From the IMG/VR virus record IMGVR_UViG_3300021962_000021, positions 62,001 to 126,000 of that record: 64,000 nucleotides of DNA; one strand, written 5' to 3'. The notes under the pieces were generated by a model. The model worked only from the letters and a program-made list of their open reading frames with translations. It was not told the origin of the DNA and ran no database searches. The translations under genes and the position numbers were made by a program. Below, in pieces: positions 1,133-59,317 of this stretch (position 1 is the first letter of the stretch; the number at the start of each line of letters is the position of its first letter).

Positions 1133-1205
1133 GGCGGATTGGCCGAGGGAAGTGAGGTGAAGCTCTGCAAAAGCTTTTAGGTAGGTTTGAATCCTACATC
1201 CGCCT
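1133..1205 (+). tRNA. tRNA-Cys(GCA)
   Basis: Acceptor GGCGGAT/ATCCGCC, anticodon arm AAGCT-CTGCAAA-AGCTT, T arm GTAGG-TTTGAAT-CCTAC. Confidence 0.85.
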
Positions 1206-1214
1206 CAACTATAT

Positions 1215-1283
1215 TGTGGGAAGGTTAGGTAACCCGTTTGGTCTCATAAGCCAGATATTCAGGTTCGATTCCTGGTCCCGCAA
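1215..1283 (+). tRNA. tRNA-Met(CAT), compact D arm
   Basis: Acceptor TGTGGGA/TCCCGCA, loop CTCATAA, T arm CAGG-TTCGATT-CCTG. Confidence 0.75.
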
Positions 1284-1289
1284 CAACAT

Positions 1290-1364
1290 GGTGGCCGTAG
1301 CCTAATGGTAGGGCGAAAGTTTGTGGCACTTTATGTAAGAGTTCGATTCTCTTCGGTCACACCA
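1290..1364 (+). tRNA. tRNA-His(GTG) with G-1 and encoded CCA
   Basis: G+GTGGCCG/CGGTCAC-A-CCA, AAAGT-TTGTGGC-ACTTT. Confidence 0.9.
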
Positions 1365-1423
1365 CCCCGGGTTTTGGAGCTGGTATCTCTTTTTCCCGAT
1401 ATAAATGAAAAAACTACCAAAAA

Positions 1424-1507
1424 GGAAAGATGGGTGAGTGGTTTAAACCAGCAGTTTACTAAACTGCCGATTCAAAAGGTCCGTGAGTTCGAATCTCACT
1501 CTTTCCG
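1424..1507 (+). tRNA. tRNA-Ser(ACT)
   Basis: GGAAAGA/TCTTTCC-G, GCAGT-TTACTAA-ACTGC, long variable arm. Confidence 0.85.
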
Positions 1508-1508
1508 C

Positions 1509-1649
1509 ATGAAAAATGATAAATTTGAAACTAACAAAAGAGTAAATCGTATTGTTAGAATAAGAAAAATTATTAGAGAAAATGGAGCTTGTTTAATATG
1601 TGTGAGAAGATGGAATGGTGGAGTGAAAAAATATAGAACAAACTGTTAA
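1509..1649 (+). CDS. small basic hypothetical protein (46 aa, CxxC)
   Basis: ATG just after tRNA-Ser; this is the 3' part of track ORF 1305..1649. Confidence 0.45.
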   Translation: MKNDKFETNKRVNRIVRIRKIIRENGACLICVRRWNGGVKKYRTNC

Positions 1650-1652
1650 AAT

Positions 1653-1726
1653 GCCCGTATGGCGTAATTGGCAACCGCACTGGTCTTAGAAACCAGTTTG
1701 TGAAAGTTCGAGTCTTTCTACGGGTA
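1653..1726 (+). tRNA. tRNA-Leu(TAG), short variable loop
   Basis: GCCCGTA/TACGGGT-A, CTGGT-CTTAGAA-ACCAG, GAAAG-TTCGAGT-CTTTC. Confidence 0.85.
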
Positions 1727-1755
1727 CAAAAAATAAATTATCAATATGTAATATT

Positions 1756-2211
1756 ATGGAATACAAACGGCTATATGATGGAGTAAAAATTGACATGATT
1801 GAATATGTCAGAGAGTATTTAAGTGGAAAAGAAAATGTAGAAATACTAATTGGTTGTGATTCACAAAACTTTTCCGATAAAACTATTTACGCAATCGTTG
1901 TAGCTTTGTATCATAAAGGTAAAGGAGCACATGTTCTTTATAGTAAATGGAAAACCCAAAGAGAACCAACACGTTCAGTAAGATTGTTGAGTGAAGTATG
2001 GTATGCGGTTGAAGTTGCTGAAAAAATGAGAGAAGCTGGTTTACCAAAAGTGAAATGGATTGATATTGATATTAACCCTGACCCAAAATACAAATCAAAT
2101 GAAGTGTTCAGACAAGCAGTTGGTTTAGTAGAAGGAATGGGATATGAAGTTAGATATAAAACACTTGGTCCAATCGCAACTTATGCGGCTGACCATTTAG
2201 TTAAATTATAA
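1756..2211 (+). CDS. RNase H-like YkuK (DUF458) family protein
   Basis: IGCDSQ...RLLSEV...IDIDINP...YKSN...AADH pattern. Confidence 0.8.
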   Translation: MEYKRLYDGVKIDMIEYVREYLSGKENVEILIGCDSQNFSDKTIYAIVVALYHKGKGAHVLYSKWKTQREPTRSVRLLSEVWYAVEVAEKMREAGLPKVKWIDIDINPDPKYKSNEVFRQAVGLVEGMGYEVRYKTLGPIATYAADHLVKL

Positions 2212-2216
2212 AATGT

Positions 2217-2248
2217 TTTGGTAGATTAGATATATTTTCGTATATTTA
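2217..2248 (+). promoter_or_regulatory. Bacteroidetes-type sigma70 promoter for the tRNA array
   Basis: TTTG-N20-TATATTTA. Confidence 0.7.
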
Positions 2249-2263
2249 ATTTATCAAACAAAC

Positions 2264-2335
2264 GCTCGGTTGGACTAGGGGTTAGGTCACATCCCTTTCA
2301 CGGATGTAGCACGGGTTCGAATCCCGTACCGAGTA
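2264..2335 (+). tRNA. tRNA-Glu(TTC)
   Basis: GCTCGGT/ACCGAGT, CATCC-CTTTCAC-GGATG, GGTTCGAATCC. Confidence 0.9.
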
Positions 2336-2338
2336 CAA

Positions 2339-2423
2339 GACATACATCACACTCAGTCAAGCCGTATTTCGCTGTTAGTGTATGTTAGATAAGAGAATGA
2401 GGCGGCTGGGACGTTCTCTTATC
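2339..2423 (+). ncRNA. putative two-hairpin kissing-loop RNA
   Basis: Stems GACATACA/TGTATGTT and GATAAGAGAA/TTCTCTTATC; loops AGCCGT and GCGGCT are complementary. Confidence 0.45.
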
Positions 2424-2430
2424 GCAAATT

Positions 2431-2503
2431 GCCTGGTTAGCTCAGCTGGTAGAGCAACTGATTTGTAATCAGTAGGTCGGAGGTTCGATTCCATCACTAG
2501 GCT
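2431..2503 (+). tRNA. tRNA-Thr(TGT)
   Basis: Canonical cloverleaf, ACTGA-TTTGTAA-TCAGT. Confidence 0.92.
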
Positions 2504-2509
2504 CAAAAA

Positions 2510-2583
2510 GGATTGGTAGTTCAGTTGGTTAGAATGCTGCCCTGTCACGGCAGAGGTCGCGGGTTCGAATCCCGTCCAATCCG
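2510..2583 (+). tRNA. tRNA-Asp(GTC)
   Basis: CTGCC-CTGTCAC-GGCAG, canonical arms. Confidence 0.93.
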
Positions 2584-2587
2584 CAAT

Positions 2588-2661
2588 GGTTCGGTAGCTC
2601 AGTTGGATAGAGCAACAGCCTTCTAAGCTGTGGGTCAAAGGTTCGAATCCTTTCCGAATCA
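2588..2661 (+). tRNA. tRNA-Arg(TCT)
   Basis: ACAGC-CTTCTAA-GCTGT. Confidence 0.93.
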
Positions 2662-2667
2662 CAAACT

Positions 2668-2754
2668 GCCCTGGTGGCGAAATTGGTAGACGCGCAAGAC
2701 TTAAAATCTTGTTCACCGTAAATGTGAGTGCCGGTTCGATTCCGGCCTGGGGCA
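2668..2754 (+). tRNA. tRNA-Leu(TAA)
   Basis: CAAGA-CTTAAAA-TCTTG, long variable arm. Confidence 0.92.
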
Positions 2755-2756
2755 CA

Positions 2757-2860
2757 ATGTAACGATTCGTAAGAATGGCTGGACGGACGCTATGTATGAA
2801 GAAAACGTAACACTACGATAAAGGTAGTGAAAAGACAGTTTAACAGCACAGCCGTTACAT
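2757..2860 (+). ncRNA. putative multi-stem ncRNA between tRNAs
   Basis: Closing stem ATGTAACG/CGTTACAT; inner stems GGCTG/CAGCC, ATTC/GAAT, CACTAC/GTAGTG. Confidence 0.5.
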
Positions 2861-2863
2861 AAT

Positions 2864-2937
2864 GGGGGGTTAGCTCAGTTGGCTAGAGCACCTGCTTTGC
2901 ACGCAGGGGGTCATCGGTTCGACTCCGATATCCTCCA
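2864..2937 (+). tRNA. tRNA-Ala(TGC)
   Basis: G3:U70 pair, CCTGC-TTTGCAC-GCAGG. Confidence 0.93.
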
Positions 2938-2942
2938 CATAT

Positions 2943-3052
2943 GCCGGAGTGGCGGAAAGAATGTGGCCACATTTGAGACGTCCCGTAATTCTAGAAAGGT
3001 GCAGTATTAGCCGAAATGGCCTGCGTGTGAGTAACCAATCTCTCCTCCGGCA
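2943..3052 (+). ncRNA. aberrant tRNA-Leu-like RNA
   Basis: Acceptor GCCGGAG/CTCCGGC-A, TGGCGGAA...AGACG D arm with an inserted hairpin, degenerate anticodon and T arms. Confidence 0.55.
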
Positions 3053-3061
3053 CCTTTATTT

Positions 3062-3135
3062 GGACCTATAGCTCAGTTGGTTAGAGCAGGGCACTCATAA
3101 TGCCAAGGTCACAGGTTCGAGTCCTGTTTGGTCCA
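3062..3135 (+). tRNA. tRNA-Ile2/Met(CAT), probably lysidine-type Ile2
   Basis: GGACCTATAGCTCAGTTGGTTAGAGC, loop CTCATAA, A73. Confidence 0.85.
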
Positions 3136-3140
3136 CACTT

Positions 3141-3213
3141 GCGGAAGTAGCTCATTCGGTAGAGCACAACCTTGCCAAGGTTGGGGTGGCCAGTTCGAGC
3201 CTGGTCTTCCGCT
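3141..3213 (+). tRNA. tRNA-Gly(GCC)
   Basis: GCGGAAG/CTTCCGC-T, CAACC-TTGCCAA-GGTTG. Confidence 0.93.
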
Positions 3214-3218
3214 CAAAA

Positions 3219-3267
3219 GGACTTAAATGGTTGATGTACACAACTGAAGTAGGTTAGTCCCACCTAC
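3219..3267 (+). ncRNA. putative small pseudoknot RNA
   Basis: GGACT/AGTCC crossed by GTAGGT/ACCTAC; inner hairpin GGTTG/CAACT. Confidence 0.4.
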
Positions 3268-3272
3268 AAATT

Positions 3273-3347
3273 GCGGGAATAGTATAACGGTTATTATGCC
3301 ATCCTTCCAAGTTGGATATGCCGGTTCGATTCCGGCTTCCCGCTCCA
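3273..3347 (+). tRNA. tRNA-Gly(TCC) with encoded CCA
   Basis: GCGGGAA/TTCCCGC-T-CCA, loop CTTCCAA. Confidence 0.9.
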
Positions 3348-3352
3348 CAAAT

Positions 3353-3423
3353 TGCCCTTTGGTGTAACGGTAGCACAATTGGTTTTGGTCCAATTAGTTT
3401 AGGTTCGAATCCTAAAGGGGCAT
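3353..3423 (+). tRNA. tRNA-Gln(TTG)
   Basis: TGCCCTT/AGGGGCA, ATTGG-TTTTGGT-CCAAT. Confidence 0.9.
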
Positions 3424-3441
3424 CATACTAAAATTGGAAAA

Positions 3442-4095
3442 ATGAAATTAACATTAAATAAAGGACAGCGGTTGTGGTTTACAAGTGACACGCATTACAA
3501 CCATGCTAACATTTGTTCCGCTACAACTAGATGGATAGAACCGGTGACTTGTAGAGAGTTTAAATCATTAGAACATATGAACGCAACATTAGTAGGTAAT
3601 ATCAATGAGTTTGTAGGACAAGATGATATTCTATTCCATTTGGGAGATTGGTCATTTGGTGGATTTGAACAAATTGAGATATTCAGAAATCAAATCGTAT
3701 GTAAGAATGTTCACATCATCACAGGTAATCACGATCATCACATTGAAAACGATAGAGAAGGTTGTCAATCACTTTTTAGTTCAGTAAACAAATACCTAAA
3801 CTTAAATGTGAAATGGTCAAATGGACACGCTGGAAATGATGAACAACGATTTGCTCTAATGCACTTTCCAATCGCAAGTTGGGATAATATGGCAAGAGGT
3901 GCGATTCATTTACACGGACATGTTCATTTTCCGCCGGCAACTAGAATTGGTTTGGGTAAGATGATGGATGTAGGATGTGATGGTAACGCATTGTATCCAA
4001 TTGAAATGAGGACTGTATTAAGTTTGATGAGAAACCAACCAATTAAAAGTATGTTCAGTTTTGACCATCACGAAATTGTAGAAAATTATAAGTAA
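3442..4095 (+). CDS. calcineurin-like metallophosphoesterase
   Basis: SDTH, HLGD, GNHD, HGHVH. Confidence 0.9.
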   Translation: MKLTLNKGQRLWFTSDTHYNHANICSATTRWIEPVTCREFKSLEHMNATLVGNINEFVGQDDILFHLGDWSFGGFEQIEIFRNQIVCKNVHIITGNHDHHIENDREGCQSLFSSVNKYLNLNVKWSNGHAGNDEQRFALMHFPIASWDNMARGAIHLHGHVHFPPATRIGLGKMMDVGCDGNALYPIEMRTVLSLMRNQPIKSMFSFDHHEIVENYK

Positions 4096-4478
4096 TGAAA
4101 GAGTTAATATTATTGAGAGGGTTACCAGGTAGTGGTAAAAGTTCATTGGCAAAATCATTTGGTGGAATGCATATTGAGGCTGATATGTTCTTTATGAAAG
4201 ATGGAGAATATAAGTTTGATGCTACTAAATTAAGATACGCACATGAATGGTGCCAAAATGTAGTTGAAGCTTGGATGGATGAGGGTGAAGAACTAATTGT
4301 AGTATCAAACACATTTACTCAAGAATGGGAAATGGATTATTACTATACATTGGCTAAGGAAGCGGGTTATATAGTTCATTCAGTTATTGTAGAGAATAGG
4401 CATGGTTCTAAAAATATACACAATGTACCTGAAGAGAAATTAGAACAAATGAAAAATAGATTTGAAGTAAAGTTATAA
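4095..4478 (+). CDS. P-loop kinase (AAA_33 / polynucleotide kinase-like)
   Basis: RGLPGSGKS, VSNTF, HNVP. Confidence 0.85.
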   Translation: MKELILLRGLPGSGKSSLAKSFGGMHIEADMFFMKDGEYKFDATKLRYAHEWCQNVVEAWMDEGEELIVVSNTFTQEWEMDYYYTLAKEAGYIVHSVIVENRHGSKNIHNVPEEKLEQMKNRFEVKL

Positions 4479-4479
4479 T

Positions 4480-5607
4480 ATGGAAAACTTAAATTCAGTT
4501 TGCTACATAGCAACAATAAATGAGATTAAACCAATCGAAGGTGCTGATAATATTGAATTAGCAGTTGTTGGTGGGTGGAATTGTATTACCAAAAAAGGAG
4601 AACAAAAGGTTGGTGATTTAGTAATGATTGCTACAACCGATGCTATTATTCCTTTAGAACTTTCAGAAAAGATGAGTGTTACTAATTACTTACGAAAAGG
4701 TGGTAGAGTTAGGACGGTGAAATTAAGAGGTGTATACTCGGAATGTTTGATTATTCCAATTACTTATATTCCTTTTATGGAAAATTACTATGAGGGTAAG
4801 GATATGATGTATGTAATGAATATTTACAAATATGAACCACCTGTTAAGACCGTTCAATTAGCAAGTGGTAGAAAGATTCGTTATCAAGACAATCCGAATT
4901 TCCACATTTACTATAAGTTCCCTAACTTAAAGAATGTACCTGGAATGTTTACCGAAGAGGACACAGTCGAAATCACTCGTAAGATTCACGGAACTAATGC
5001 TCGTTATGGTATTGTTAAGAAAAACAAATTATCATTGTGGGATAAAGTGAAGAAATTCTTTGGAGTGGCAGATAGATGGATTGATTACGAATTTGTGGTT
5101 GGCTCTCACAATGTGGAAAAAGGAAGTGAATCACAAGGTTTCTACGATACTAATGTTTGGTATGATATTGAAAAGAAATATGATATTAAAAAGAAGTTGT
5201 GGGAGTATGTGAAATTGTTCAGCCCTACTAACATAGGCGATGGTATTACCTTATATGGTGAGATTTACGGAGCTGGAATTCAAAAGGGATATGATTATGG
5301 ATTGAAAGAGATTGAGTTCGTAGGATTCGATGTAAAAGAGAATGGTGAGTATTTAGATACAATCAATTCAAAGTTACTTATCAAAGAACTTCTAAAGTTA
5401 CCATATGTTGAACAATTGTATTTTGGTGAATGGTCGCAAGATGTGCAAGACAAATACACATTCAATAATTTTATCAAAGGAACGAAAATACCTGAAGAAG
5501 GAATTGTGATTAAAATTCATACGGGGGAAAGACAAAAGGTAGCTAAAGTTATCAACCCAGATTATCTAATTTATAGTGAAAAGCATAATGTAGGTGATAG
5601 TCACTAA
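4480..5607 (+). CDS. RNA ligase (DRB0094/Rnl5-like)
   Basis: N-terminal IEGADNIELA OB-like region; KIHGTN (motif I), GEIYG, GFDV, EGIVIK, AKVIN. Confidence 0.88.
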   Translation: MENLNSVCYIATINEIKPIEGADNIELAVVGGWNCITKKGEQKVGDLVMIATTDAIIPLELSEKMSVTNYLRKGGRVRTVKLRGVYSECLIIPITYIPFMENYYEGKDMMYVMNIYKYEPPVKTVQLASGRKIRYQDNPNFHIYYKFPNLKNVPGMFTEEDTVEITRKIHGTNARYGIVKKNKLSLWDKVKKFFGVADRWIDYEFVVGSHNVEKGSESQGFYDTNVWYDIEKKYDIKKKLWEYVKLFSPTNIGDGITLYGEIYGAGIQKGYDYGLKEIEFVGFDVKENGEYLDTINSKLLIKELLKLPYVEQLYFGEWSQDVQDKYTFNNFIKGTKIPEEGIVIKIHTGERQKVAKVINPDYLIYSEKHNVGDSH

Positions 5608-5614
5608 AAATAAA

Positions 5615-5646
5615 TTTGGAAGTTTGAAAAAACTTTCTTATATTTA
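5615..5646 (+). promoter_or_regulatory. Bacteroidetes-type promoter
   Basis: TTTG-N20-TATATTTA. Confidence 0.65.
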
Positions 5647-5672
5647 CATAGTTAAAATTTAAAACATAAACA

Positions 5673-6101
5673 ATGAATGTAAAACAAGCGTTAAAACAAA
5701 AAAACAAATTGGTTACCGATTTGAAAGCTCAATATGAGATTTTGAAAAAGTATAACTCAATTGAAGAAGGAAACCCACGTAGATATTCAATGTCCGTTAC
5801 ATTGACGGTAATTGAAACAATTCAATTTGAGTTAGTTGAATTGAAAGCAAAAATCCATAAAGCAAACCAACCGGTATATGCTAAAATATTTGAATTAGCA
5901 GAGTTGAAAGGATTGGTAAAGGAATTAAAAAAAGTTCCAACCGAAGAAGGTAAAATAGCTGAAAGATACGGAAGCGTTATTTCAGTAAAAGAAGTGGAAT
6001 TGAATGTGGTGGATATTCAAAACAAAGTGGATGCGTTAAGTGAAAGAATTGAAGAGTTGCAAAACGAATTAGATATTCACAACGCAAACACACAAATCTA
6101 A
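5673..6101 (+). CDS. coiled-coil protein, DIP1984-like
   Basis: MNVKQALKQKNKL...LKAKIHKAN...IEELQNELDIHNANTQI. Confidence 0.65.
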   Translation: MNVKQALKQKNKLVTDLKAQYEILKKYNSIEEGNPRRYSMSVTLTVIETIQFELVELKAKIHKANQPVYAKIFELAELKGLVKELKKVPTEEGKIAERYGSVISVKEVELNVVDIQNKVDALSERIEELQNELDIHNANTQI

Positions 6102-6106
6102 AAATA

Positions 6107-6310
6107 TTGAGTGAGTGGGGTTTGAAACTGATTGATTAGTTTATTCTTACAATTCTACTATGATACCAAATAGCGGATGAACGAATAAGATAATGAATAA
6201 TTAACAAACTTCAACAATATTAGGGTCACTTGTCGCGTAATTTCAAAACACTCAAACCTCTTTGAAACTCGGATAACCTTTTTAATTGGATTCATTCCTC
6301 ACAAACTCAA
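6107..6310 (+). ncRNA. putative ~200-nt structured RNA downstream of the DIP1984-like gene
   Basis: Ends pair (TTGAGT..GTGGGG..TGAA / TTCA..CCTCAC..ACTCAA); inner pair TTATTC/GAATAA; no ORF. Confidence 0.5.
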
Positions 6311-6337
6311 ATTATTAAAAAATTAAAAACAAATGTT

Positions 6338-6607
6338 ATGGGTTTTGGAACTTATTATTTACTTTGCTTTGTTTATTGCATTTATCAATTGATAAAAAAA
6401 TGGAATAAAAATGTAATGGCCGGTGGTTTAGGTATAACACCTGGATTGGACTCTATAATGATTATTATTATGGCTCCAATATTAGCACCAATTGATATAT
6501 TTTTAACATGGATGCGATTGTATAAAGAAGCAGAAGAAGCAAGAAGAAAACACGCTGATACTGATAATAGTTTAGACGGTAAAAGCAGAGATGAAAAAGT
6601 ATTCTAA
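6338..6607 (+). CDS. small membrane protein
   Basis: Two hydrophobic segments. Confidence 0.7.
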   Translation: MGFGTYYLLCFVYCIYQLIKKWNKNVMAGGLGITPGLDSIMIIIMAPILAPIDIFLTWMRLYKEAEEARRKHADTDNSLDGKSRDEKVF

Positions 6608-6614
6608 TTATTAA

Positions 6615-6699
6615 GGAGAGATGGCAGAGTGGTTGAATGCACCGGTCTTGAAAACCGGCAACTGTAACAGGTTCTGGGGTTCGAATCCCTGTCTCTCCG
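6615..6699 (+). tRNA. tRNA-Ser(TGA)
   Basis: GGAGAGA/TCTCTCC-G, CCGGT-CTTGAAA-ACCGG, long variable arm. Confidence 0.93.
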
Positions 6700-6704
6700 C
6701 ACAT

Positions 6705-12157: not shown

Positions 12158-12283
12158 ATAACTAATTGATAATCAAAGGCTTATATATTAAGCCTTTTTT
12201 TATTGCATAACTGATTGATTTTCAACATATTAAAAAAAACTTTCATAAATATTTGGTAAATTCAAAAATTTTTCGTATATTTA
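12158..12283 (+). promoter_or_regulatory. operator-terminator-operator-promoter module
   Basis: Two ATAACT..TTGA-N3-TCAA boxes flanking hairpin AAAGGCTTA/TAAGCCTTT, then TTTG-N20-TATATTTA. Confidence 0.7.
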
Positions 12284-14588: not shown

Positions 14589-14704
14589 CATAACTCATTG
14601 ATAATCAAAGGGGTATATATTACCCCTTTTTTTATTACATAAATCATTGATAATCAATTAATTAAAAATAAATTTGGTGAAACGGGAAATTTTTCGTATA
14701 TTTG
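14589..14704 (+). promoter_or_regulatory. operator-terminator-operator-promoter module (homologous to 12158-12283)
   Basis: CATAACTCATTGATAATCAA, hairpin AAAGGGGTA/TACCCCTTT, CATAAATCATTGATAATCAA, TTTG-N20-TATATTTG. Confidence 0.7.
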
Positions 14705-20877: not shown

Positions 20878-21055
20878 CATAACTAATTGACCCTCAATGG
20901 GTTACGCATAAGTCGTTGATTATCAATGAGAAAATTCTTTATTGACAATCAATGACTTATGCTTTTGGTTTTATAGGGTATTTCATAACTCGTTGATTGT
21001 CAATGAACAATTTTTTCAAATTATTTGGCCAGTTCGGGAAAATTTCGTATCTTTA
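20878..21055 (+). promoter_or_regulatory. array of four TTGA-N3-TCAA boxes plus promoter
   Basis: Cores at 20887, 20916, 20942, 20993; TTTG(21024)-N20-TATCTTTA. Confidence 0.7.
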
Positions 21056-21102
21056 CAGGGTAAAGTTTCCAATATTGGAGATATATATAAAATTTTATTA
21101 AT

Positions 21103-21924
21103 ATGAGTAAGTTACAATTCACAACAATTTCTAGTGCTAAAAAACAAACCGGCCTATCGTATTTAGGTAGTGTGGCGAGTAGTTCAAAAATTGCTAAAGG
21201 TTTAAAATATAACGAAATGACTTATATATTATATCTTGCACCTGCTGAACAAAGTGGTTACAATGTGTGTCCAATGTCAACGGAAGAATGTAGAACGGCG
21301 TGTTTAACAGAGTCGGGTCACAATCGTATTGATGTTAAAAAGAACGCAATCAATAAAGCTCGTATCAAAAAAACAAAGTTATTCTTTGAACAACGTGATT
21401 TCTTTATGGCTTGGTTGATTACCGAAATACAAAAAGCTAAGATTGATGCAGATACCAAAGGTTATCAATTTTCAGTTCGTATCAACGGAACATCCGATAT
21501 TAGTTTAGAAAGTTTCAAAGTGAAAGGTATGAATATATTAGAGTTCTTCCCACTTATTCCTTTCTATGATTATACGAAAGTTGCTAATCGTTTCAAAATG
21601 TTAGATAAGTATGATAACTACGATTTAACATATTCATTCAGCGGACATAATATGTTTCAATGTTTAGAATTATTAAACGAAAGAAAAGGTCGTGTGGCTA
21701 TGGTGTTTGAAGGTAAAGTATTACCAAAAACATTTATGGGATATGATGTAATTGATGGTGATGCGTATGATATGAGATACTATGATGCGCAAGGTGTAAT
21801 TGTAGGATTAAAGTTTAAGAAAGTTCGTAACAAAATTGATACGGCTAATAACAAATTCATTATTCCAATGGATAGTAAATTTAGTGTTTATGAAAAACAA
21901 AGTGAAAAGGTTAAGTCCAAATAG
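21103..21924 (+). CDS. GP88-family phage protein (Cys-cluster, radical-SAM-like)
   Basis: LYLAPA, NVCP..C..CL, RINGTSD, FYDYTK, DGDAYDMR. Confidence 0.7.
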   Translation: MSKLQFTTISSAKKQTGLSYLGSVASSSKIAKGLKYNEMTYILYLAPAEQSGYNVCPMSTEECRTACLTESGHNRIDVKKNAINKARIKKTKLFFEQRDFFMAWLITEIQKAKIDADTKGYQFSVRINGTSDISLESFKVKGMNILEFFPLIPFYDYTKVANRFKMLDKYDNYDLTYSFSGHNMFQCLELLNERKGRVAMVFEGKVLPKTFMGYDVIDGDAYDMRYYDAQGVIVGLKFKKVRNKIDTANNKFIIPMDSKFSVYEKQSEKVKSK

Positions 21925-45516: not shown

Positions 45517-45753
45517 ATGAATATAAGAAAATATAACGAATGGAATGATAAAGAAGGTATAATGAAAACTATGCCAATGTGGATAACAAAAGGTTGGAGA
45601 AGGATAACAGGATATAAAACAAGAGGATATAAAAATAGAGTTAGTTTAGTTGGTTGGAGTAGAACATATATTGCTGAACCTGAATTAACAAAACATATAA
45701 AACGAAATAGAGTCCATAAGTTGTGTATATTAAACAATACAGTGTCAAAATAA
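45517..45753 (+). CDS. basic hypothetical protein
   Basis: ORF. Confidence 0.5.
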   Translation: MNIRKYNEWNDKEGIMKTMPMWITKGWRRITGYKTRGYKNRVSLVGWSRTYIAEPELTKHIKRNRVHKLCILNNTVSK

Positions 45754-46033
45754 ATAATGTAGTGTTAATTTGTGGGTAAAAGTGGTAAATTGTGTTAAAG
45801 AGTGGTAAAAATTTAATGTGTCAAAATAATTTACTTACATACTTACACACTACAAAGAAAACAAATTACTATAAAAGTGTATCACTATAAACTGAAATAT
45901 CCCACCTGCGTTCACACTGCGCAATGTTTTTCCCGGCAATACAAAAATGGTGAAAGGGGATGCGCAGAGTTAGTCCCGATTAGTTAGGTGAGTTGCGCAA
46001 AGTGAAATTAATTTAGCTATTGTGGTCCGTGCG

Positions 46034-46116
46034 ATGAAACGCAGACCTGTAACGGGTTTCCTGAAGATACGAAAAATATTCCACATTGCCAAATATAAGC
46101 CTGGTCTGCGTTTCAT
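46034..46116. repeat. 14-bp perfect inverted repeat enclosing a minus-strand promoter
   Basis: ATGAAACGCAGACC (46034-47) / GGTCTGCGTTTCAT (46103-16). Confidence 0.85.
46062..46093 (-). promoter_or_regulatory. Bacteroidetes-type promoter on the minus strand
   Basis: Reverse complement TTTG-N20-TATCTTCA with TTCGTA context like the + strand promoters. Confidence 0.6.
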
Positions 46117-46230
46117 TAGATAATTTTTATTTCGCACCGTGTCTCTTTTAAATAATATCTAACAAAACCTTTATATAATTGATTGATTTTCAATGAGTTG
46201 CATAACTTGTTGATTATCAGTTAGTTGCCA

Positions 46231-46258
46231 GTGTCCTATATAATATATTATGTTAAAT
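46231..46258 (+). other. dif-like Xer recombination site 1
   Basis: GTGTCCTATAT-AATATA-TTATGTTAAAT (exact XerD arm). Confidence 0.5.
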
Positions 46259-46304
46259 AGGGAAGTAATTGATTGTCAGTGCTTTACGCAAGAAAAACCC
46301 GAAA

Positions 46305-46332
46305 AAAACTAATAATTGATATTATGTTAAAT
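46305..46332 (+). other. dif-like Xer recombination site 2
   Basis: AAAACTAATAA-TTGATA-TTATGTTAAAT. Confidence 0.55.
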
Positions 46333-46548
46333 AGAAATTTCGTAACTAATTGATTGTCAACGAGTTATGTTTTCAAAAATTCTTTATTGACAATCAATCA
46401 GTTATGCCGGCGGAAATATATCGGTTTTATAACTCGTTGATTGTCAATAAACTTTTTTTTCAAATTATTTGGTGGTCCCTAAAATTTGCCGTATCTTTAC
46501 AGGGTAAAGTTCCAATATCGGACAAGGTATATAAAAAATTTGTAATAT

Positions 46549-46923
46549 ATGAGTAAGTTTAACATTGAATTTAAAGAAAGTATCAAAACCGGCGGTAATC
46601 GTTTGGGTCAATTGATTGAAAACCCTTTTAAGAATTTTGCCGCGAGTAAAATGAGTTTAGGTAAAAAAACTATGTGTATCGTTGAATATACCGATTTGTT
46701 GGGTAATGTTCACCGCATTAAATGTAATAACCGAAAACAAATGACTGAAGCTCAGTTATTCCTTTCTATGTTTAAAAAGGAAGCCGCTACTATTAAAAAT
46801 ATTATTGCGGAATATCCAATTTCTTATGGTCGTATCCCTAAAAAGTTTATGAGTGAATTGCGTAGTGAATTGGTTGAATTTGGTTTAACTTACAAATTCA
46901 TTAACAAATTGGCTGGTTATTAA
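46549..46923 (+). CDS. hypothetical protein (putative early gene)
   Basis: First ORF after promoter, MSK start. Confidence 0.7.
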   Translation: MSKFNIEFKESIKTGGNRLGQLIENPFKNFAASKMSLGKKTMCIVEYTDLLGNVHRIKCNNRKQMTEAQLFLSMFKKEAATIKNIIAEYPISYGRIPKKFMSELRSELVEFGLTYKFINKLAGY

Positions 46924-47706: not shown

Positions 47707-48024
47707 ATGAGTAGAAAGAAAAGGTCAGATAGAAACCACGTTATATACGAAATTGTGAATACATCAAACGGCAAATCGTATATCGGTATAACTGCCGCAA
47801 TTGGACGTAGGTTTCATTATTCTGCTCACTTGCGTTTCTTAAAACACCAGAGCAGAGCCCGTAAAGAGAAAAAGCAATGGGCATTGTATATTGATATGCG
47901 TGAGAATGATCCTGAAGTTTACGAATTGTTTATCGTTGACGTAGTAAGGGGTAAAGCATTAGCTCACCAAATCGAAACGGAATTGTTAAAAGAATTTAAT
48001 TACGAACTAAATAGTACACATTAA
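47707..48024 (+). CDS. GIY-YIG nuclease family protein
   Basis: VIYEIVNTSNGKSYIGIT, R..H, E...N. Confidence 0.75.
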   Translation: MSRKKRSDRNHVIYEIVNTSNGKSYIGITAAIGRRFHYSAHLRFLKHQSRARKEKKQWALYIDMRENDPEVYELFIVDVVRGKALAHQIETELLKEFNYELNSTH

Positions 48025-58496: not shown

Positions 58497-59317
58497 TGAA
58501 ATTATTTACATTCGGTGATAGTTGGACCGAAGGAGTTGGTTCCGATTGGCAGGAAGAATTAAAAACCGAAGATTTAGAAGAAAGAACAAAAATACGTCAT
58601 AAATACGCATGGCCTACATTGTTATCAAAACATTTAAATATTCCTTTTGATAATTTTGGAATAGGTGGTTGTTCTAATAAAAGTATATTTGATGCAGTTT
58701 GTAATTCAGTAGATACCGATTTAATTAAAAAAGATGATTTGGTTGTTATAATGTGGAGTTCATCTTTAAGAGATTCTGTTCCATTTTTTCCTGATAATAA
58801 TTCCTGGCACTATTGGGGTGAGAGATATAAACGAAAAGAATATTTGTATAAAAAAGTATTTAAAAATACAAATATAACTACAAAATACGATAGAATAAAA
58901 AAAGAATATCAAGAATATTTTTTAGCAAATTTATTTACGGATGAATATTATCAAATCGTAAACCAAAATTATATTTTATATTTACAATGGATGTTTAAAA
59001 AAATTGGTATAAGATATATTTTTTGTGATGCATTTGATTTAATGATAAAAGATGATATTTCAAAAAACATAGATAAAACTAATCTAATTGATAAAAACCA
59101 TTATTGGGGTATTTCAAATAAAACTTTAAAAGATTTATTAATAAATACAAATAGAAAGGATGTGTGGGGAGATGGACAACATTGGAAAGATTTAACAGAG
59201 GGTAAACATCCTAACAAAAATGGATATAAATTAATTGCGAATGAACTATATGATTTTATATTAAATAAAAACATATTAACATATAAGACGAACAATATCG
59301 AAAATATTATTATATGA
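58496..59317 (+). CDS. SGNH/GDSL hydrolase-fold protein
   Basis: FGDSWTEG, NFGIGGCSN, HPNKNGY; ends ENIII. Confidence 0.8.
   Translation: MKLFTFGDSWTEGVGSDWQEELKTEDLEERTKIRHKYAWPTLLSKHLNIPFDNFGIGGCSNKSIFDAVCNSVDTDLIKKDDLVVIMWSSSLRDSVPFFPDNNSWHYWGERYKRKEYLYKKVFKNTNITTKYDRIKKEYQEYFLANLFTDEYYQIVNQNYILYLQWMFKKIGIRYIFCDAFDLMIKDDISKNIDKTNLIDKNHYWGISNKTLKDLLINTNRKDVWGDGQHWKDLTEGKHPNKNGYKLIANELYDFILNKNILTYKTNNIENIII

Follow-up and report, generated by a model that had tools for sequence, protein, structure and literature searches.

Tandem dif-like sites in a 238-kb tailed phage of Bacteroidota and in many of its relatives

Results

A gene-free region with two dif-like sites and six palindromic boxes

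The DNA analysed here, referred to as the window, is a stretch of 64,000 nucleotides corresponding to bases 62001-126000 of the 238,219-bp IMG/VR virus record IMGVR_UViG_3300021962_000021. The locus of interest is a 795-bp gap without genes, located between a run of small + strand ORFs and a conserved gene encoding a 124-aa protein (Table 1). Within this gap, the 11-mer TTATGTTAAAT occurs exactly twice, 74 bp apart and in direct orientation, and these are the only exact copies in the window. Both copies lie inside an exact 16-nt repeat that has only these two copies in the complete genome, and each copy ends a full 28-bp site composed of an 11-bp arm, a 6-bp centre, and an 11-bp arm. The sites are interleaved with six TTGA-N3-TCAA boxes, each of which is the core of a palindrome of about 25 bp, ATAACTnnTTGA-N3-TCAAnnAGTTAT. 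A first-pass annotation, made from the sequence alone, had described two exact copies of the E. coli XerD arm in direct orientation 74 bp apart, the second with an ATAA-N6-TTAT layout, interleaved with palindromic boxes, and this description proved accurate in every detail.

Table 1. Features at and around the dif-like sites (window coordinates unless stated otherwise)
Feature	Position	Strand	Sequence or layout	Observations
Gap without genes	45754-46548
Leftward promoter	46062-46093	-	-33 TTTG (46093-46090), 20-nt spacer, -7 TAtcTTCA (46069-46062)	Motif AGATACGAAAAAT conserved at the same relative place in relatives
Box 1	46183-46193		TTGATTTTCAA	XerC-arm side of site 1; same position kept in relatives
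Box 2	46210-46220		TTGATTATCAG	XerC-arm side of site 1; same position kept in relatives
dif-like site 1	46231-46258	+	GTGTCCTATAT (46231-46241), AATATA (46242-46247), TTATGTTAAAT (46248-46258), followed by AG (46259-46260)	XerC-type arm, centre, XerD-type arm; 19/22 to the Bacteroidota dif core
16-nt repeat, copy 1	46245-46260	+	ATATTATGTTAAATAG
Box 3	46269-46279		TTGATTGTCAG	Between the two sites; starts 10 nt after the XerD arm of site 1
dif-like site 2	46305-46332	+	AAAACTAATAA (46305-46315), TTGATA (46316-46321), TTATGTTAAAT (46322-46332), followed by AG	XerC-type arm, centre, XerD-type arm; 20/22 to the Bacteroidota dif core
16-nt repeat, copy 2	46319-46334	+	ATATTATGTTAAATAG
Box 4	46350-46360			Between site 2 and the rightward promoter; also kept in relatives that lack the dif-like sites
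Box 5	46387-46397		Inverted	As box 4
Box 6	46437-46447			As box 4
Rightward promoter	46468-46499	+	-33 TTTG (46468-46471), 20-nt spacer, -7 TAtcTTTA (46492-46499)	Bacteroidota type; precedes the conserved operon starting at 46549
Conserved 124-aa gene	46549-46923	+		Used as anchor to find relatives
Other box clusters	Genome 58654-59275; window 12166-12225, 14598-14657, 20887-21003			Upstream of Bacteroidota-type promoters; no dif-like sites

The sites lie between two divergent putative promoters. Bacteroidota promoters follow the rule TTTG-N19/20-TAnnTTTG, and the promoters of this phage have a very conserved form of it, TTTGg..N..ttcgTAtaTTTg, which occurs at 9 or more places in the genome. 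The 16-nt repeat does not fit this -33/-7 promoter type and, with only two copies in the genome, does not constitute a promoter class. A sigma-70 promoter and terminator scan showed no enrichment. Box clusters of the same kind stand upstream of promoters at four other places that have no dif-like sites, suggesting that the boxes are a general regulatory element of the phage rather than dedicated Xer accessory DNA. A search of the intergenic gap against Rfam, at gathering score and at E <= 10, found no family, only weak miRNA-like hairpin noise over the box palindromes, and the leftward non-coding region showed no conserved secondary structure. The 124-aa downstream protein matched no Pfam or PHROG family, and its AF2 model (pLDDT 78) had no PDB fold match, so it cannot be called the protein that binds the boxes or a Xer activator.

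The phage encodes no recombinase of its own

The genome has about 30% GC and encodes 16 tRNAs, a large terminase subunit, a gp32-like protein, a RecA/UvsX-like protein, RNR, PhoH, DNA ligase, a MoxR ATPase, and a radical-SAM protein. This is a tailed jumbo phage with a T4-type replication and recombination kit, and it looks virulent. A search of the annotated phage collection gave no DNA match. The same genome also occurs as a 238,732-bp metagenome contig, 100% identical over the 12.4 kb compared, whose ends are rotated by 43.5 kb, suggesting a circular or circularly permuted map. The 3' end of the record cuts a RecA-like ORF that is not completed by joining the end of the record to its start, so a few hundred bases are probably missing there.

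Family searches of the genome found no tyrosine recombinase (PF00589), no serine recombinase (PF00239), no ParB, no FtsK, no XafT-like DUF3653 (PF12375, at E <= 1), and no HU/IHF. The weak ParA (CbiA) hits turned out to be a RecA-like protein and PhoH. Any recombination at these sites must therefore use host enzymes. GC skew is positive along the entire genome with no inflection. The first-pass annotation had proposed the absence of a nearby skew inflection, together with a lack of Xer binding or recombination, as grounds for rejecting its reading, but in a genome without any inflection the skew criterion is uninformative.

The sites match the predicted dif of the host phylum

Taken alone, the sequence match is only marginally better than chance in this AT-rich genome. 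The 11-mer is not enriched, as with up to one mismatch it occurs 15 times against 13.5 expected. Against the 22-nt core of Bacteroidota dif, the two sites are the two best matches in the 238-kb genome, but local shuffles match this core at 18-20 of 22 positions and reach 20/22 in 4 of 100 trials. The two copies are moreover a repeat and not independent events.

The best comparison is with predicted Bacteroidota dif and not with E. coli dif. Among the predicted Bacteroidetes dif sites listed by Kono et al. (PMC3025954, Additional file 2) are AATACTTATAA-TTTATA-TTATGTTAAAT of Chitinophaga pinensis, AAGTCCTATAA-TTTATA-TTATGTTAAAT of Flavobacteriaceae bacterium 3519-10, TTGTTATATAA-TTTACA-TTATGTTAAAT of Cytophaga hutchinsonii, and that of Pedobacter heparinus, which ends in TTATGTTAAGT. 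Site 2 matches the C. pinensis dif at 25 of 28 positions and site 1 matches that of Flavobacteriaceae bacterium 3519-10 at 23 of 28 positions, and the XerD arm matches at 11/11. A scan of one genome for each of 185,579 species for TATAA-NNNATA-TTATGTTAAAT yielded at least 120 contigs, mostly from Bacteroidota, with some from Gamma- and Betaproteobacteria, each with one match. In these host sites, the XerC arm is typically (T/A)TGTC(C/T)TATAA and the XerD arm is often followed by AG. Site 1 shares TGTCC and both phage sites share the AG, although none of these positions was part of the pattern of the first-pass annotation or of our own. In a sample of 151 Bacteroidota genomes, 84 carry TATAA-N6-TTATGTNAART, nearly always once, whereas the reversed control pattern is found in 15.

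In contrast to a chromosomal dif, which is present in single copy at the GC-skew switch of the replication terminus, the phage has two copies in tandem in a genome without a skew switch. The two arms have partial dyad symmetry around the centre: site 2 has AATAA-N6-TTATG, while in site 1 of the window the inner arm base is T (TATAT).

Conservation in relatives is confined to the dif footprint

Using the 124-aa protein as anchor, relatives were collected from IMG/VR and from JGI metagenomes, all of which look like freshwater lakes, with the best 80 of 246 metagenome relatives being examined. Of 87 distinct upstream regions with enough sequence, 48 carry two or more sites at the same place, 3 carry one, and 36 carry none. 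One relative has three phased sites, and the 251-kb relative Ga0209400_1000003 lacks the sites at this locus. A contig with two inverted dif-like sites is a perfectly palindromic assembly artefact and not an invertible switch. The pair is found in relatives whose neighbouring protein is only 38% identical, and the most distant carriers, at 38-48% protein identity, have arms closer to host dif than those of the window, with TATAA-N6-TTATG in both sites, for example TTGTCCTATAA-AATATA-TTATGTTAAGT and TTTTCCTATAA-TTGATA-TTATGTTAAAT.

Pairwise identity among the 48 carriers is 0.93-0.95 for the XerD arm, 0.87-0.88 for the inner five bases of the XerC arm, 0.88-0.97 for centre positions 4-6, 0.40 for centre positions 1-3 of site 2, and 0.31-0.48 for the 20-nt flanks. 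This is the footprint expected for a dif site, and for site 2 the conservation is confined to C(C/T)TATAA-nnnATA-TTATGTTAA(A/G)T-AG. It is this conservation, and not the match itself, that shows that the sites are not due to chance. On the gene tree, the pair occurs on both deep branches and lineages without it are nested among carriers, with at least 5-10 changes, which fits an old trait that has been lost repeatedly and is dispensable.

We considered the possibility that the 28-mers have nothing to do with Xer and are operators or a promoter element for a phage or host DNA-binding protein, or inert relics of captured host DNA. The AT-rich composition, the position in a dense regulatory region with other repeated motifs, and the absence of the module from many relatives are in favour of this. 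However, the likeness extends to positions that were not used to find the sites, namely the outer XerC arm TGTCC/TTTCC, the trailing AG, and the exact 11-6-11 geometry. Conservation maps onto the dif footprint and not onto a generic palindrome, the motif occurs nowhere else in the genome, and inert relics would not remain 93-95% identical in the XerD arm while their flanks drift. We regard this explanation as unlikely.

The sites are phased and differ in their centres

The start-to-start spacing of the sites is 63/64 bp (20 cases) or 74/75 bp (28 cases) and nothing else, corresponding to six or seven helical turns. Box 3 begins 10 nt after the XerD arm of site 1 in 46 of 48 cases. The two centres differ in 47 of 48 pairs. 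The centre of site 1 is almost always AATATA (31 of 48), AAGATA, or AATATG, whereas that of site 2 varies (TTGATA, TGGATA, ATTATA, CGCATA, ATGATA, CTGATA, and others). None of these equals the common host centres TTTATA, TTAATA, or TATATA: positions 1-3 differ from the host TTT, TTA, and TAT in all variants seen, while the XerD-side ATA is kept.

These features led us to consider an array of XerCD-binding sites that does not recombine. The phased sites, together with a protein binding the boxes, could assemble a stable nucleoprotein complex without strand exchange, possibly an intramolecular, dead-end synapse of sites 1 and 2 around a bent box 3. Such a complex could act as an architectural or regulatory element between the divergent promoters, or as a decoy that soaks up the few XerC/XerD molecules of the host during infection. 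The restricted spacing, the fixed offset of box 3, the heterospecific centres, which would block strand exchange between the two sites, the location inside an operator-like box array, the relative with three sites, and a virulent-type gene content without an obvious need for dimer resolution support this hypothesis. On the other hand, Xer proteins are not known to act as transcription or architectural factors on full two-arm sites, and the XerD-only sites that unload SMC in Bacillus are half-sites. Both arms and the cleavage-proximal centre positions 4-6 are conserved, as expected for catalytically competent sites, and the phage encodes no HU/IHF-type bender. We therefore consider this reading rather unlikely, although it is not excluded.

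No integrated copy of the phage was found

The first-pass annotation had inferred either dimer resolution of a circular, plasmid-like phage replicon or integration at the host dif. Integration of the whole genome into the host dif, as in the case of IMEX (CTX, VGJ, and TLC phages, the gonococcal island, and Bacteroidetes microviruses), would be consistent with near-perfect dif mimics in a genome without any integrase. As centre positions 4-6 equal those of host dif, an XerD-first exchange with dif is conceivable. Bacteroidetes microvirus proviruses are flanked by dif-like sites and some carry an extra one near an end (PMC3091885), and we found Bacteroidota-type dif sites on many small viral contigs (4-14 kb). 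However, no relative of the adjacent gene was found in one genome for each of 185,579 species, and no host junction was seen in about 100 viral and metagenome contigs, a non-exhaustive set in which every contig with enough upstream sequence has phage DNA on both sides of the sites. The genome is also four times the size of the 57-kb island that a review calls an unusually long IMEX (PMC5357621), its gene content is of virulent type, and centre positions 1-3 differ from those of common host sites. Integration thus appears unlikely, but it is not excluded.

Discussion

The interpretation given in the first-pass annotation is partly supported: the reading as dif-like Xer sites is strongly supported, more so against Bacteroidota dif than against E. 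coli dif, whereas neither of the purposes proposed for them is shown. Nothing marks the phage as plasmid-like. Our analysis establishes the sequence identity to host dif, purifying selection on exactly the dif footprint, the phasing, the heterospecific centres, and the absence of phage recombinases, whereas binding and cleavage by XerC/XerD, the reaction itself, and the role of the boxes are inferred. We consider it probable that the sites are bound by host XerC/XerD, the alternatives being other binders or relics.

As a tentative explanation, we favour that the two 28-bp elements are functional mimics of the host dif site, each of which would be bound by host XerC on the left arm and XerD on the right arm, and that identical sites on sister or concatenated copies of the putatively circular phage genome recombine. 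This would resolve multimers, decatenate circles, or cyclise a terminally redundant genome, the jobs that cer and psi do for plasmids and Cre/loxP does for phage P1, here outsourced to host enzymes. In this view, the different centres would prevent productive recombination between the two sites, explaining why a direct repeat only 64-75 bp apart is stable, while each site could still pair with its own copy on another molecule. The difference from the usual host centres on the XerC side should disfavour complete exchange with the host chromosome. The boxes would probably bind a transcription factor that also shapes or gates the Xer complex. Against this explanation, virulent-looking, recombination-driven phages package from concatemers and do not obviously need multimer resolution, the phage has no ParB or other plasmid-maintenance genes, one site would be enough for resolution, two or three phased sites interleaved with boxes suggest a more elaborate complex, and 36 of 87 relatives lack the module at this place. 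No binding or recombination data exist, and according to PMC3091885, published in 2011, Xer had not been studied experimentally in Bacteroidota.

The sites share with predicted chromosomal dif of Bacteroidota (Kono et al. 2011, PMC3025954) the 28-bp geometry, the XerD arm (TTATGTTAAAT or TTATGTTAAGT), the inner XerC arm (C/T)TATAA, centre positions 4-6, and the trailing AG, but they lie on a phage, in 2-3 tandem copies, between promoters and interleaved with operator-like boxes. Like cer (ColE1) and psi (pSC101), they are, as inferred from sequence, Xer core sites on an extrachromosomal element without a recombinase of its own and with putative protein-binding DNA next to the core; at cer and psi, recombination is restricted to copies on one molecule (PMC5357621). 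However, cer and psi have a single core and about 180 bp of accessory DNA on the XerC side, bound by PepA with ArgR or ArcA, whereas here boxes lie on both sides of the cores, boxes 1-2 on the XerC side of site 1 and box 3 on the XerC side of site 2, and also occur at promoters without Xer sites.

IMEX likewise carry dif mimics without an integrase and exploit host XerCD, and BMV4-6, among the Bacteroidetes microviruses BMV1-7, have an extra dif-like site near one end (PMC3091885, PMC5357621). Known cases are small ssDNA or tailless phages, or islands up to 57 kb, found integrated at dif, whereas the present element is a 238-kb tailed phage whose two sites are direct and not inverted as in CTX. 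The XafT activation factor of TLC-phage-type Xer exploitation was not found in this genome. Cre/loxP of phage P1 is a phage-borne tyrosine-recombinase site used to cyclise terminally redundant DNA and to resolve dimers, and heterospecific spacers block recombination between lox variants, but P1 encodes its own recombinase and is a plasmid prophage with a partition system, neither of which is encoded here. In pdif modules of Acinetobacter plasmids, several Xer sites on one replicon flank short DNA segments, but these sites flank gene cassettes in alternating orientation, whereas the phage sites are direct and enclose only one operator box.

Exploitation of host Xer recombination has been described for plasmids, for filamentous, micro- and tailless phages, and for genomic islands (PMC3091885, PMC5357621, PMC12715192). 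Our literature searches found no report of a large tailed phage with dif mimics, which is not proof that none exists. As the mimicry itself is common among small elements, what is new here is the carrier and the tandem, phased, heterospecific architecture embedded in operators. A more far-reaching possibility, which we consider unlikely but cannot exclude, is that a clade of roughly 240-kb, virulent-looking tailed phages of freshwater Bacteroidota has turned the host dif into a phased, heterospecific array of 2-3 XerCD-binding sites wired into an operator cluster between divergent promoters. Such an array would not serve integration, but would build a host-Xer nucleoprotein machine, either for FtsK-independent processing of phage DNA circles gated by a phage transcription factor, or as a trap for host XerCD. 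Either way, it would be the first use of Xer by a large tailed phage and a new architecture for Xer sites.

The sites offer ready-made substrates for a first biochemical study of Xer in Bacteroidota. If they work, phage-borne dif mimics become a host-phylum marker for uncultured phages. Here, where the host is inferred only to phylum, they agree with the Bacteroidota-type promoters, and the TTTTCCTATAA arm of distant relatives is a weak hint towards Chitinophagaceae. The tandem, phased, heterospecific arrangement next to operator boxes would then give a natural system for studying how Xer recombination is gated without FtsK, and it would follow that jumbo phages can outsource a recombinase function to the host.

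Regulatory boxes and genomic context

Further features of the phage genome and of related contigs were noted, and the coordinates of those in the phage genome are collected in the table below. The genome contains a box regulon, inferred from sequence alone, in which clusters of a roughly 25-bp palindrome, ATAACTnnTTGA-N3-TCAAnnAGTTAT, sit just upstream of strongly conserved Bacteroidota-type promoters (TTTGg..ttcgTAtaTTTg). At two places, the boxes bracket a hairpin terminator. A perfect DnaA-box sequence, TTATCCACA, lies inside one further box cluster, between two tRNA-like stretches, although this may be chance. In addition, the promoter, the 5' leader, and the first codons (MSK..) of the 124-aa gene downstream of the dif-like sites are duplicated in front of a GP88-family gene, forming a paralogous regulatory cassette.

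Coordinates of additional features in the window and in the whole phage genome record (G000:C1)
Feature	Position	Strand
Box clusters	window 12166-12225, 14598-14657, 20887-21003, 46183-46447	
Box cluster outside the window	G000:C1:58654-59275	
Perfect DnaA-box sequence, outside the window	G000:C1:59212-59220	
Cluster of 16 tRNA genes	window 1133-6700	
Promoter, 5' leader and first codons of the 124-aa gene	window 46437-46551	
Duplicate of this cassette	window 20993-21105	
GP88-family gene behind the duplicate	window 21103-21924	
Short phased direct repeats	window 45742-45829	
Leftward promoter and stretch without an ORF	window 45890-46093	-
Conserved leftward promoter	window 46093-46062	-
Gap separating mosaic (left) from conserved (right) gene order	window 45754-46548	
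105-aa ORF, GIY-YIG-like	window 47707-48024	

The 105-aa ORF, which gave GIY-YIG homing-endonuclease-like PHROG hits, is the best conserved gene of the neighbourhood, with 67-97% identity across relatives. Gene order to the right of the gap containing the dif-like sites is conserved in all relatives, whereas to the left it is mosaic. Eleven related contigs end within 0.45-1.3 kb upstream of the 124-aa gene, and only one ends within that distance downstream, indicating either a plasticity boundary or an assembly-break hot spot. At the 3' end of the phage genome record (G000), a RecA/UvsX-like ORF is cut, and joining the end to the start does not complete it. The same genome in a metagenome contig (L284) is 513 bp longer and rotated by 43.5 kb.

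dif-like sites in other viral contigs

More than 116 IMG/VR contigs (L168-L283) carry a Bacteroidota-type dif site. Most of them are 4-14 kb long and unrelated to the clade studied here, and they are therefore candidate small Xer-exploiting elements or prophage ends. One of them, L274, has an inverted pair of sites about 90 bp apart. The two inverted dif-like sites of L205 (IMGVR_UViG_3300032287_003670) are not real evidence of an invertible segment, since the whole 4.5-kb contig is a perfect palindrome around its centre, which is an assembly fold-back artefact.

A leftward promoter and iteron-like repeats

The conserved leftward promoter points into a roughly 170-nt stretch without an ORF, which ends at a conserved GGTGGGATATTT. 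It is the only minus-strand feature seen in a genome otherwise read on the + strand. The middle of this stretch varies in length and is rich in ACTCACC and CTGCGCA motifs, and it has no conserved fold. The short phased direct repeats in the same region consist of (A)GTGGTAAAA-like units about 10 bp apart and of GTGTCAAAATAA, which occurs twice (76 bp apart). These repeats are conserved in relatives and look like iterons. Together with the leftward transcript expected from the promoter, this gap could hold a replication origin.
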